Shown: in pieces, positions 22,581-40,615 of the stretch
Layout of the letters: each line of letters begins with the position of its first letter
Numbering within the stretch: position 1 is the stretch's first letter
NCBI GenBank assembly: GCA_002269645.1
Contig: NIVC01000418.1
Span: forward strand, 120,813-184,812
Source: Macrostomum lignano
Taxonomy: Eukaryota
Direction of reading: 5' to 3'
Length of the DNA stretch: 64,000 bases
Position numbers and translations under genes: made by a program
The notes under the pieces: model-generated
The model's input: only the letters and a program-made list of their open reading frames with translations
Database searches by the model: none
Told to the model about the DNA's origin: nothing

Positions 22581-25500
22581 TCAACACGGCCGATTCTCTC
22601 GACCATCCAGCGGCCGCGGCAGCCGGCGCCTCCTGTCTCGATCCCGACGTCGCCAGGACGAGGTCGACGTCGACGACGGGTGAATGAGCTCGACGGGCAC
22701 CTCGCCCTCGGACAGCGACGAGTCCATCCGGGAGTCCGGGCGCAGCTCCGGCCGCGAGTCGCAGAACCGGGAATCCACCGGGGAATCCAGCCGGGAATCC
22801 AGCCGGGAATCCACCGGGGAATCCAGCCGGGAATCCAGCCGGGAATCCGTCGTGTAGCCAAGTCGCGAGTCCGCAGTCGGCGAGGACACCCGAGAGGAAT
22901 CCCCAGGCGGGAAATCCGTGGGGGAATCCTGGCGAGAATCGGCCGTTGCCGCCGTCGCCTCGTCATCGCGAGGCAAAACAAGGCGGCGAAGTCGACGCGC
23001 CTCGGAGGCGATGCGCTGTTCGGCTGTGCAGCCGCCGACTCCGCCGCCGTCGCTGCTCAGGTTGTCGTAGTTGGACTCAGAGGCGGGTCCGCTGCCCACG
23101 GAGTGCTGAGGCTGCTTTGGTGGATTTTTTAAAAAGTAAGAGAGAGCAGTAAAAATGAGTTAATAAAGCCATTGAAGAAATAGGGAAACAGTCCGAAAGG
23201 GAATCTTTTTTGGGATATCTAAACGTGGAAAACCCCAAAACGGGAAATCCAAAAGGGAAACCCAAAAACGGGAAATCCAAACGAGGAAAACCCCAAAACG
23301 GGAAATCCAAAAGGGAAACCCCAAAAACGGGAAATCCAAACGGGGAAACCCTAAAACGGGAAATACAAAGAGGGAAACCCCAAAACGGGAAATCCAAAAG
23401 GGAAACCCCAAAAACGGGAAATCCAAACGGGGAAGCCCTAAAACGGGAAATCCAAACAGGGAAACCCAAAAAACGGGAAATCCAAACAGGGAAAACCCAA
23501 AACGGGAAATCCAAACAGGGAAACCCAAAAAAGGAAATAAAAAAGGAAACCCAAGAAACGGGAAGCACTACAAATGGGAAATCCAAACAGGGAAAACTTA
23601 AAATAGGAAATCTCTACATATAAAAATCAAAACTCTGTCTGTCTGTCTGTCTGTCTGTCTGTGGACAAATTACTTCGCTATGGACTCCCAAACCGCTCAA
23701 CCAAATTACACCAAACTTTACACCCACCCTAAACTTACTACGGAGAATGTCTTAGGCTACCTTTAAATTTCCTAGACTCAAGTCTTCCTACCTAAAAGTG
23801 CAAAAAACTGCTCAAAATGCGCGATTTTTTCACTTAATCCTTCATAGCGTCGCTCCACTTCTACCGATTCTCTTCAAATTTGACACAATCAATTTTCAAC
23901 TATTTTGACACAATCGTGTAAAATTTCGAGTCTCAAAGTTAATCCTAAACGGTGCTGTGCACTTTTAAGGTTAGGCTGTTTTTTTTGCAGCGTAGCAACC
24001 ACCCCAACCTCCGCCCGCCTGCCTCTCTTTCCCGATCTGGGCCGAGATGTGTAAAAGGGTTTCAAAATTGACTAACTTTCAGCTGCCATAAGTTTGCTCC
24101 ACGTAAAGCGATTGACTTCAAACTTGACACAATTCTTCATTGACTCATTCTCTGTCAAAATGTAAAGTTTCAACTCTGTAACTCAACCGAAAAAGAAACT
24201 GTAAGCATGTGAAGTTTGTCTGCTTTTTCTGTTGTTTGTGCCACTCACTCACTCATTCCCCCAGAGCCAGACGAAGGGTCAGGCGATAGGACTGAATGTA
24301 CATAGCAAATGTACAGTGTTTTGGAATAACTTTATTTATAACCTTCTCTGCACCCCGAGAGTGGAGAGGCTACGTTTAGCCGTAACAGTTTAGTGAGAAA
24401 TTCTAACCACTGCCCTCCCCTCTGTATTGGCAAACTCTGCAGCAGTTTAACAGTGGATGGCAATTGGCAATTGGCAAATCGAGGGAATCCACTATCCAGC
24501 AGGGTTTGTAAAAGCGAAAGATTTATGAAAAGGCGATGCGATGCAATGCAATACAACCCTACTAAAAGAGGCACACCATGGAAATTTTAGGTTTCTTTTA
24601 AAGGTACTGTGTAAATATTAAATGGCCTCCTAAGAAATGCGTATTTCCTTGGTTGTTAGACTGATGCAGACTGCAGTGGAGCTGAAGATACACAAATTCC
24701 TTTCAGGGCTGCAAATTGGCAAGAAAGATGACGTGATCAAAGCATGAGAACAACCATGAGAGTACTACGTCCCACAAACTGGCTTTCCAAGCAGGGATGG
24801 GCAGACTTTTACCTCAAAGGCCAAAAAAGAATCCAGCTCATGGCTGAGGGGGCAGTTGAGAGTGGAGAGAAGGAATAGACTATTCGAAAAGAGAGGAGAG
24901 GTGAGAGAGGGAATAATAGAAAAGATAAAAGATAATAGGAGAGATGAGGGAGTGAGGACGATGAGAGGAGAGAGTAGAGAGGAGAGAGTAGAGGAGCGAG
25001 TAGAGAGGAGAGAGTAGAAGAGCGAGTAGAGAGGAGAGAGGAGAGAGGAGAGAGCAGAGGAGCGAGTAGAGAGGAGGAGAGAGTAGAGGAGCGAGTAGAG
25101 AGGAGAGAGTAGAGGAGCGAGTAGAGAGGAGAAGAAAGATGAGAGGAGAGATAAGAGAGAGGTGGAAGCAGAGAGAGAGGGGGGAAGCAGAGAGAGAGGG
25201 AGGAAGCAGAGAGAAATGAAAAGAGATAAAAGAAACGAGACAAGAGAGATGAAAAAGAAGAGAAATGAGGGAAGATACGAGAGAAGAGGGGAGAGAGGAG
25301 AGAGGAAAAAGAGAAGAGAGGAGAGGAGAGAGAGCAGAAAGGAGAGACGACGGACGAGAGAGACGAGAGGAAACAGAAGAGAAGATAGAAGTTTCAAAGA
25401 ATCCAAGAGACGTAGGGAGAGTCAGAGGCAGAGGCCAGAGTTTGCCAATACATGTTTTAGGGTCAGACAGACATTAACCAGCACCCCAGCCAACAATATC

Positions 25501-40500: not shown

Positions 40501-40615
40501 GCTGCTGATGGCTGTGATGCCGAAGAAGATGCTGGCGGTACAGCTTCGCAGAGTCACTGCCGCCTCCGCCTCCACCACCGCCGCCATCTCCATGCTCGTC
40601 GAAACGATGACTCAT
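22581..40615 (-). CDS. Transmembrane (12-TM, class III) adenylyl-cyclase-family protein, ~1640 aa, probably catalytically inactive
   Basis: 16 phase-consistent exons: 40615-39764, 37521-37372, 36758-36643, 36145-36031, 34308-34178, 33834-33676, 33004-~32562 (donor uncertain), 32018-31927, 31505-31323, 30702-30607, 29963-29493, 28988-28863, 28198-27746, 26980-26798 (GC donor), 26508-25678, 23111-22581. M1 (6 TM); [17 protein letters not shown]; C1 ([37 protein letters not shown]); M2 ([11 protein letters not shown]...); [11 protein letters not shown]; C2 ([22 protein letters not shown]); long low-complexity tail. Confidence 0.9.
23215..23610. repeat. ~19-20-bp array (aaacgggaaatccaaa...)n
   Basis: Degenerate tandem units just upstream of the last cyclase acceptor. 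Confidence 0.9.
23632..24285 (+). mobile_element. Possible non-autonomous Helentron-associated (HINE/DINE-1-like) element
   Basis: Short (GTCT)n followed by repeated ccgattctcttcaaatttgacacaa / gcgattgacttcaaacttgacacaa core blocks, an arrangement reminiscent of DINE-1; termini not defined. Confidence 0.35.
24860..25440. repeat. GA-rich low-complexity tract
   Basis: Degenerate gagaggagagagtagagga units. Confidence 0.9.
26560..26780. repeat. Degenerate array (ggaaattccccaatgggata...)
   Basis: Fills intron 14 of the cyclase gene. Confidence 0.75.
27045..27685. repeat. Degenerate (ctagcaacc)-core array with an internal block duplication
   Basis: Recurring tagcaacc; block ~27200-27330 repeated at ~27405-27520. 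Confidence 0.8.
28220..28790. repeat. ~42-50-bp array (aatgtacgttggggaagagaattcttc...) interrupted by ~190 bp of unique sequence
   Basis: Units at 28225-28280 and 28485-28780. Confidence 0.8.
29160..29470. repeat. GA-rich low-complexity tract
   Basis: Purine-rich degenerate units in intron 11. Confidence 0.85.
30040..30560. repeat. 21-bp minisatellite (agatcccatcagctgttcttt)n
   Basis: About 24 units; source of the GSKEQLM ORF. Confidence 0.95.
30805..31295. repeat. (CAGA)n microsatellite
   Basis: Tetranucleotide array in intron 9. Confidence 0.97.
31590..31860. repeat. 30-bp minisatellite (ctgattggcccaggctgtcctatctcaatt)n
   Basis: About 9 units. Confidence 0.92.
32240..32485. repeat. 16-bp minisatellite (gggatttgagatgact)n
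   Basis: About 14 units. Confidence 0.93.
33890..34132. repeat. 21-bp minisatellite (tttctaacctgaaagcgccag)n
   Basis: About 11 units. Confidence 0.93.
34352..34692. repeat. (GATA)n microsatellite
   Basis: Tetranucleotide array. Confidence 0.97.
35280..35905. repeat. (TCTG)n microsatellite
   Basis: Tetranucleotide array with the same TTAGTG interruptions as 204-799. Confidence 0.97.
36420..36630. repeat. (CAAT)n degenerate microsatellite
   Basis: Array in intron 3. Confidence 0.88.
36920..37330. repeat. (CTGA)n grading into (CTAA)n microsatellite
   Basis: Array in intron 2. Confidence 0.95.
37695..38170. repeat. GA-rich minisatellite (gagagacaggagagtga)n with higher-order duplication
   Basis: Source of the RQESERE ORFs. 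Confidence 0.92.
39110..39490. repeat. ~32-bp array (tttctaagaaacagctctatcttaaattat..)n
   Basis: About 12 units. Confidence 0.92.
39551..39703 (-). mobile_element. tRNA-derived SINE copy
   Basis: Same body as 17865-18115; lies ~60 bp past the exon-1 donor of the cyclase gene. Confidence 0.8.

Follow-up and report, generated by a model that had tools for sequence, protein, structure and literature searches.

What becomes of a membrane adenylyl cyclase (tmAC) that keeps its whole architecture and loses most of the residues with which it would make cyclic AMP (cAMP)? This question is raised by a gene on the minus strand of a 64,000-nucleotide stretch of the genome of the flatworm Macrostomum lignano (assembly GCA_002269645.1, contig NIVC01000418.1, positions 120,813 to 184,812; hereafter the window), in which a first-pass annotation made from the letters alone had noticed a full-length tmAC homolog. 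On the evidence set out below, the gene is best read as coding for a maintained, probably non-catalytic pseudoenzyme derived from a tmAC, a reading to which we give a probability of roughly 0.68. The protein is predicted to fold like a cyclase and would probably make little or no cAMP.

The minus strand from 40615 to 22581 was found to carry an intact multi-exon gene, for which a 17-exon splice model gives a protein of 1680 residues with one terminal stop. This region is identical to an 18,035-bp gene of contig NIVC01000418.1 in assembly Mlig_3_7 (BOX15_Mlig012584g1; positions 3001-21035 of our locus L002), and the start (40615) and stop (22581) of its GenBank coding sequence (CDS) coincide exactly with the ends of the gene in the window. 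The annotated protein, PAA83474.1 (1672 residues), equals the 1680-residue product minus one 24-nt repeat unit of the last exon; the unit skipped by the GenBank CDS is a ‘DSRLDSPV’ repeat that is present in the genomic exon (22581-23111). Splice sites were first placed by frame and consensus on a six-frame translation and then fitted to the transcript-based GenBank structure. All introns are of the GT-AG type with the sole exception of intron 15/16, which has a GC donor (gcgagt) and is GC-AG. An alternative splice model, with exon 7 joined to 32018 and a GT donor at 26794 used with an acceptor at 26537, was also considered and dropped for the transcript-based structure; the frame is open either way. 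The gene limits and the uninterrupted spliced reading frame of the first-pass annotation were thus confirmed, while its estimates of 16 exons and ~1640 residues proved slightly low because the 38-nt exon at 32162-32125 had been overlooked. A cluster look-up at 90% identity or more returned three GenBank models, BOX15_Mlig012584g1 (1672 residues), BOX15_Mlig009489g1 (1656 residues) and BOX15_Mlig012968g1 (1016 residues, partial). The homolog is labelled ‘hypothetical protein’ in GenBank and ‘adenylate cyclase’ in UniProt. Its WormBase-derived models from the older ML2 assembly (UniProt A0A1I8... entries) contain many frameshifts and bear misleading automatic names (‘DENN domain-containing’, ‘Protein kinase domain-containing’ and ‘Piezo_RRas_bdg domain-containing’).

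The architecture of the spliced protein was examined with Pfam, which matched PF00211 only, in two stretches (E = 2.9e-28), and with a Kyte-Doolittle scan, which gave ~6 hydrophobic segments at residues 116-305 and ~6 more at 730-962. The two membrane bundles and two cyclase domains (C1 and C2) reported earlier are therefore borne out. The parts follow one another as N-terminus, six helices, transducer helix, C1, six helices, transducer helix, C2 and a long disordered tail, which up to the end of C2 is the order found in the class IIIa tmACs AC5 (8sl3) and AC8 (8buz). In phmmer searches against PDB chains, C1 and C2 each aligned to both of these enzymes, and transmembrane (TM) region TM2 and the ‘LLP..VA’ transducer motifs are alignable as well; the tmAC motif ‘LLPxxVA’ lies in the helical segment after each bundle, where it aligns with the motifs of AC5 and AC8. 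In a pairwise alignment with CAH1788384.1 of the annelid Owenia fusiformis, the nearest relative recovered outside Macrostomum, the two motifs pair with ‘LLQSLLPQQLAADVK’ (C1 side) and ‘ILCNMVPTHVAIQYI’ (second), and the second bundle shows strong local likeness to the Owenia TM7-9 region (LPRT..LLL.LF, KC...K...RLVVV, NVLCC). The C-terminal tail (~450 residues), in which Pro, Ser, Arg and Asp abound, contains DSRLDSPV repeats, a poly-Pro run and an acidic cluster, and gave no Pfam domain match. In architecture and homology this is a member of the tmAC family, yet it fails the catalytic-residue test.

Class III cyclases use a two-metal mechanism, in which the parts played by D396 and D440 of AC5 and by N1025, R1029 and K1065 of AC2 are supported by structures of the C1·C2·Gs-alpha complex and by mutagenesis. 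Gap-free phmmer alignments to AC5 and AC8 place the first metal-binding Asp of C1 (D396; VSILFADIEGFT, ‘nvsilfadiegfts’) on Cys378 (codon TGC) in the VSACIDGL region of the flatworm protein, whereas the second (D440; ‘kilgdcyycvsglp’) is kept as Asp423, with SFDGDTY aligned to KILGDCYY. In C2, again without gaps, the adenine-selecting Lys (K938) has become Arg1093 (codon CGC; KIRCTG against KIKTIG). Along the C2 stretch YDIWGNTVNVASRM of AC5 and AC8 (‘pqydiwgntvnvasrm’) the adenine-selecting Asp is retained as Asp1169, the transition-state Asn (N1025) is replaced by Arg1176 and the transition-state Arg (R1029) by Ala1180; codons 26953-26939 translate as RVADA. The Lys of the GKG loop (K1065) falls on Ala1217, where Owenia ‘LRGKGD’ stands against ‘WLDGAR’ in the flatworm protein, this being the least secure part of the alignment. 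Codons and alignments thus agree with the first-pass annotation, which had read the first Asp of FADI as Cys, the second metal-binding Asp as kept in FDGDTY, K938 as Arg, D1018 as kept, N1025 and R1029 as Arg and Ala, and the VKGKG loop as absent (VWLDGARW).

Taken together, the heterodimer set is C/D (C1) and R/D/R/A/A (C2), where a canonical enzyme has D/D and K/D/N/R/K; two of the seven positions survive, which is no better than the background identity of 27%. Bacterial cyclases tolerate changes at the K938 position, and K938R taken by itself is weak evidence. The pseudo-symmetric second site is no better equipped, as the Asp-equivalents in C2 are Gly and Arg and the K/D/N/R-equivalents in C1 are Ser, Gly, Asp and Ala. 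These residues rule out a swapped active site in which C2 would supply the Asp pair and C1 the K/D/N/R set, and guanylyl-cyclase specificity was likewise ruled out, the substrate positions being Arg/Asp instead of Glu/Cys. The residues of the forskolin site (W-S...T in C1 and S942 in C2) are also without match when the AC5 and AC8 alignments are inspected by eye. The losses take in one metal-binding Asp of C1 and the C2 residues (Asn, Arg and Lys) that contact ribose, transition state and pyrophosphate. Since the residues of the two-metal mechanism have mostly been lost, little or no cyclase activity would be expected.

Whether chance could account for these departures was judged with a profile of the cyclase domains found in the top 150 library matches, the six key columns being tabulated in ~200 domains. 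These columns are 74-87% conserved in the ~200 cyclase homology domains, which speaks against chance, and DDKDNR is the commonest full pattern. The set includes three canonical animal tmACs, in which C1 carries Asp/Asp and C2 carries Lys/Asp/Asn/Arg (Owenia differing by a Lys in place of Arg). At the conserved columns that are not catalytic, the flatworm protein matches the consensus in 29/57 cases for C1 and 14/31 for C2 (51% and 45%), and the canonical Owenia cyclase in 31/61 and 33/61 (51% and 54%). Because structural columns are kept about as well as in the canonical annelid enzyme, the loss appears to be selective for the catalytic positions: on these counts, the losses fall specifically on catalytic positions, and those that determine the fold are retained, the fold itself being a prediction.

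The genome of M. lignano is of recent polyploid origin and comprises three subgenomes (S, L1 and L2), for which single-nucleotide polymorphism rates of ~2.4% (S-L) and 1.9% (L1-L2) have been published (PMC10733133). Two further loci, L001 and L003, are collinear with the window, flanking genes included. The synonymous distance of the window copy to either is 0.024-0.026 and that between L001 and L003 is 0.017, in agreement with the published rates, so that the three copies fit an S, L, L set. The residues at the catalytic positions are identical in all three, and their loss should therefore predate polyploidisation. Splice-acceptor use in the C1b linker differs among the copies.

Comparison of the three subgenome copies shows purifying selection on the reading frame. 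In the core of the protein the ratio of non-synonymous to synonymous substitution (dN/dS) is 0.32, 0.30 and 0.14 in the three pairwise comparisons (binomial p 1e-4 to 7e-4), and in the tail it is ~0.28 when the window copy is compared with either of the others; the tails of L001 and L003 differ at three sites only, and their dN/dS of 0.73 is uninformative. In the comparison of the window with L001, identity is 97-100% for exons 1-15 and 90% and 94% for the tail exons, the latter owing to in-frame indels, and all exon indels are multiples of three (3, 3, 66 and 24 nt). In the introns of the same pair, substitution divergence is 5.2%, and 162 of the 173 indels counted over 8.8 kb have lengths other than a multiple of three. 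The dN/dS check that had been proposed for this gene, made here among subgenome copies, gave 0.14-0.32 for the core, and with the lack of frameshifting indels between the two intact copies and the transcript-derived models it upholds the earlier view that the gene is maintained and not decaying.

The third copy, in L003 (BOX15_Mlig012968g1, NIVC01000884.1), lacks one base pair in a run of G within exon 7 (L003 ~8610), a deletion that shifts the frame in the C1b linker. Its GenBank model begins only at the exon after the deletion, which would explain the truncated annotation. Either one homeolog has truly been inactivated, or the deletion is an error of the assembly or of PacBio reads at a homopolymer.

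The GenBank models of this assembly were built from genome-guided and de novo transcript assemblies, and not ab initio (PMC5730564), from which it follows that one copy or more must be transcribed, with the splicing that the models show. The last exon is 24 nt shorter in both other copies, which equals the gap in the annotated CDS of the window gene, so the supporting transcript may stem from another copy. The gene identifiers were found neither in the open-access text of papers nor in the supplements of three M. lignano papers, and no expression table was found to list the gene.

Relatives outside M. lignano were sought by an exhaustive HMMER search of 1.84 billion representative proteins, for which the query was a partly frameshifted WormBase model running from the N-terminus to C1. 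With this query the N-terminus and the first bundle had no match outside M. lignano, and the best foreign matches (55 bits or less) were confined to the last ~90 residues of C1. Word-indexed protein searches returned almost only M. lignano models, the low-complexity words having probably swamped the 8000 candidates; even the Owenia sequence was not returned. Re-scoring of the foreign matches with the full-length protein singled out CAH1788384.1 (2031 residues) at 164 bits, with 27% identity over ~1100 columns that cover both bundles and both domains. Looked up by cluster, the other foreign matches proved to be protist or metagenome proteins, with no flatworm reference cyclase among them. Direct comparison gave 74.5 bits to AC5, 74.3 to AC8 and ~36 to AC9, so that among these references AC5 and AC8 stand level and both above AC9 (the AC2 reference being its C2 domain alone), as against 644 and 618 bits for the Owenia core with AC5 and AC8; when Owenia was the query, the flatworm protein ranked beneath protist cyclases. 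From its scores of >600 bits to AC5 and AC8, CAH1788384.1 looks like a working enzyme, and it is at most a candidate ortholog of the flatworm gene. The flatworm gene is best explained as a paralog of the animal membrane adenylyl cyclases that has diverged strongly, and the searches give no evidence of a conserved family, the probable pseudo-cyclase having so far been seen in M. lignano only.

Set beside known systems, the protein differs from AC5 and AC8 in having the equivalents of D396, K938, N1025, R1029 and K1065 replaced, and in its long Pro-rich, acidic tail. Owenia CAH1788384.1 also has a very long C-terminal extension; unlike the flatworm protein, it retains D/D in C1 and, in C2, K/D/N with Lys in the place of Arg. 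Loss of catalytic residues with regulatory use of the site is an established feature of the family, as in tmACs and soluble guanylyl cyclase, whose second site (forskolin or allosteric) is degenerate, but in the flatworm protein both C1/C2 pockets are degenerate and no catalytic site appears to be left. Pseudokinases and pseudophosphatases likewise keep the fold, have lost the catalytic motifs and are under selection; for the flatworm protein, a non-catalytic role is a proposal. The mycobacterial cyclases Rv1900c and Rv0386, whose cyclase homology domains are also off the K/D and N/R consensus, are reportedly active despite non-canonical residues at substrate or Asn positions. These keep both metal-binding Asp residues and measurable activity, whereas the flatworm protein keeps one Asp, and they are soluble or single-domain homodimers, whereas the flatworm protein is a 12-TM pseudo-heterodimer.

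That the protein is still an enzyme, a diverged cyclase with weak or unconventional nucleotidyl-cyclase activity, is the alternative that deserves most attention. Asp423 could bind metals together with Cys378 or with nearby acidic residues such as Asp380, and Arg1093 and Arg1176 could stand in for Lys and Asn; one metal-binding Asp, a P-loop-like I-x-G-L-T, the adenine-binding Asp1169 and the fold-determining positions are all retained, purifying selection fits an enzyme equally well, and Rv1900c and Rv0386 are said to be active in spite of non-canonical residues. We nevertheless consider it unlikely, since at least four required positions (the equivalents of D396, N1025, R1029 and K1065) have changed together and the second site is empty too, and since the survival of 2/7 catalytic positions at the 27% background level suggests release from catalytic constraint; the score of 74 bits to AC5, against 644 bits for the canonical annelid cyclase, points the same way. 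A lineage-specific paralog drifting towards a pseudogene, intact only since the polyploid copies are young, would account for the extreme divergence from every other cyclase, the failure to find an ortholog, the low complexity of much of the protein, and the 1-bp exon 7 deletion with truncated annotation in one of three copies. Such decay is improbable given a ~5-kb reading frame over 17 exons that is intact in two copies, dN/dS of 0.14-0.32, preserved splice sites, transcript-derived models, and exons free of frameshifting indels between the window and L001 against 162 non-triplet indels in 8.8 kb of introns; 27% identity to the nearest relative also means a long divergence through which the frame has stayed open. 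Hardly credible is an artefact of annotation or assembly that would make the substitutions or the open frame unreal: the assembly is PacBio-based and redundant, and the ML2 models of the gene are full of frameshifts, but three independently assembled copies agree at every catalytic position and the window reads through cleanly with canonical splice sites.

Several points count against a maintained pseudoenzyme. Some bacterial class III cyclases function with non-canonical substrate-binding or Asn positions, and catalytic residues may have ‘migrated’ elsewhere in the pocket of the flatworm protein. The selection signal spans only ~2.5% synonymous divergence, i.e. the time since polyploidisation, and the three pairwise dN/dS comparisons are not independent. 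If the deletion in L003 is real, one copy is being lost, and the transcript evidence cannot be assigned to the window copy. Lastly, the search of 1.84 billion representative proteins with the N-terminus-to-C1 query gave no ortholog outside M. lignano and no relative above 27% identity.

With these points weighed, a non-catalytic pseudoenzyme remains the reading we prefer, for a homolog whose catalytic columns are lost and structural columns kept, whose gene models are transcript-derived and which is under purifying selection. Because it fails the catalytic-residue test, ‘tmAC-derived pseudoenzyme candidate’ would be a fitter name than adenylyl cyclase; the UniProt name ‘adenylate cyclase’ is likely to mislead and is probably wrong as a statement of activity. 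The protein would owe its retention to some non-catalytic task at the membrane, most plausibly the binding or regulation of G proteins, active cyclases or other proteins by way of its C1/C2 dimer, its bundles and its Pro-rich acidic tail, and nucleotide binding may persist. A nucleotide- or protein-binding membrane regulator would be compatible with what has been retained, namely the adenine-binding Asp, the dimer core, the motifs of the transducers and the long Pro-rich acidic tail. The particular roles put forward in the first-pass annotation (receptor, scaffold, G-protein sink, or dominant regulator through heterodimerisation) are speculative guesses. A bolder proposal holds that a 12-TM cyclase has turned into a purely non-catalytic signalling protein, with both pockets dead and membrane-to-C1/C2 coupling kept, a receptor or scaffold that would tune cAMP by sequestering G proteins or pairing with active cyclases; we regard it as doubtful in this full form.

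In the open-access literature text we found no description of a catalytically dead full-length tmAC, no paper with the word ‘pseudo-cyclase’ or ‘pseudocyclase’, and neither a paper nor experimental data on BOX15_Mlig012584g1, in keeping with the first-pass annotation, which did not recognise full-length dead tmACs as a described family. The tmACs are among the best studied signalling enzymes, and the contribution of their membrane domains and helical transducers is still debated. If true, a tmAC selectively kept without its catalytic residues would mean that the scaffold can serve a function apart from cAMP synthesis, and it would be a naturally ‘dead’ control in studies of how cyclases dimerise, how they bind G proteins and what their membrane domains do, in an animal suited to such study by the availability of transgenesis and RNA interference. 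Conservation across Macrostomorpha would make it the first described full-length tmAC pseudoenzyme. For one fast-evolving gene in one species, and with pseudoenzymes common across enzyme families, the general surprise is moderate; orthologs with long-term retention or a demonstrated regulatory role would raise the significance.

Table 1 Features of the tmAC homolog and repeat arrays in the window (window coordinates)
Feature	Position	Strand	Basis
Whole coding region, tmAC homolog	22581..40615	-	splice model; BOX15_Mlig012584g1 / PAA83474.1
Exon 1	40615-39764	-	splice model
Exon 2	37521-37372	-	splice model
Exon 3	36758-36643	-	splice model
Exon 4	36145-36031	-	splice model
Exon 5	34308-34178	-	splice model
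Exon 6	33834-33676	-	splice model
Exon 7	33004-32566	-	splice model
Exon 8, 38 nt	32162-32125	-	splice model
Exon 9	32038-31870	-	splice model
Exon 10	31505-31323	-	splice model
Exon 11	30702-30607	-	splice model
Exon 12	29963-29493	-	splice model
Exon 13	28988-28863	-	splice model
Exon 14	28198-27746	-	splice model
Exon 15	26980-26798	-	splice model
Exon 16	26508-25678	-	splice model
Exon 17	23111-22581	-	splice model
N-terminal cytoplasmic region, residues 1-113, Gly/Ala/Gln-rich, low complexity	40277..40615	-	composition; no Pfam match
First membrane bundle, residues 114-305, exon 1 and part of exon 2, ~6 hydrophobic segments	37459..40276	-	Kyte-Doolittle; aligns with Owenia TM1 region
Helical transducer and C1, residues 306-535, exons 2-7	32923..37458	-	PF00211 at residues 370-518; phmmer to AC8/AC5 C1
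C1b linker, residues 536-725, includes the 38-nt exon 32162-32125	31500..32922	-	variable region
Second membrane bundle, residues 726-962, exons 10-12, ~6 hydrophobic segments	29526..31499	-	Kyte-Doolittle
Second helical transducer and C2, residues 963-1227, exons 12-15	26798..29525	-	second PF00211 stretch; phmmer to AC8/AC5 C2
C-terminal tail, residues 1228-1680, exons 16-17	22584..26508	-	composition
Cys378, first metal-binding Asp position (AC5 D396)	36130..36132	-	codon TGC; column Asp in 87% of domains
Asp423, second metal-binding Asp (AC5 D440), kept	34273..34275	-	alignments
Arg1093, adenine-selecting Lys position (AC2 K938)	27965..27967	-	codon and alignments
Asp1169, adenine-selecting Asp (AC2 D1018), kept	26972..26974	-	alignments
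Arg1176, transition-state Asn position (AC2 N1025)	26951..26953	-	codon and alignments
Ala1180, transition-state Arg position (AC2 R1029)	26939..26941	-	codon and alignments
Ala1217, pyrophosphate-binding Lys position (AC2 K1065)	26828..26830	-	pairwise Owenia alignment; least secure placement
Tetranucleotide microsatellites	200-960, 5600-8230, 20500-21870, 30800-31320, 34350-34750, 35250-35950, 52400-53370
Minisatellite arrays, units ~21-50 nt, introns and intergenic	30030-30590, 33880-34140, 37700-38200, 23160-23620, 8700-9900, 53670-54520, 55000-55610, 56125-56870

An immunoglobulin I-set domain gene lies downstream of the tmAC homolog in both L-type loci (L001 32364-37355 and L003 22072-27288), and positions 17686-12203 of the window (minus strand) are collinear with the I-set gene part of L001, so that the neighbourhood is conserved across subgenomes. 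On the other side of the homolog, an intact open reading frame (ORF) of 402 residues at 50087-51298 (minus strand) codes for a mariner/Mos1-type transposase (Pfam Transposase_1, E = 4.5e-23, with HTH_48 and DDE_3) and may belong to a recently active element. The plus strand then carries, at ~51875-57000, exons of a protein arginine methyltransferase-like gene, with an ORF at 51875-52300 that is CARM1/PRMT-like by eye and another at 53198-53566 with an S-adenosylmethionine-binding motif (Pfam PrmA/MTS); a (GTCT)n microsatellite occupies the intron between them. Exons of an alpha/beta-hydrolase gene follow at 59045-60749 (plus strand; Pfam Abhydrolase_3, ‘HGGGW’ motif).

Very long tetranucleotide microsatellites of two kinds, translating as ‘SVCLSVCL’ or ‘LSIYLSIY’, occur in the window, the longest run reaching up to 2.6 kb. 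Several of these sit in introns of the tmAC homolog, and they yield long spurious ORFs in many frames. Among the minisatellites, the array in intron 11/12 (30030-30590) consists of ~25 repeats of a 21-nt unit translating as ‘QLMGSKE’, and minisatellite copy numbers vary among the three subgenome loci.

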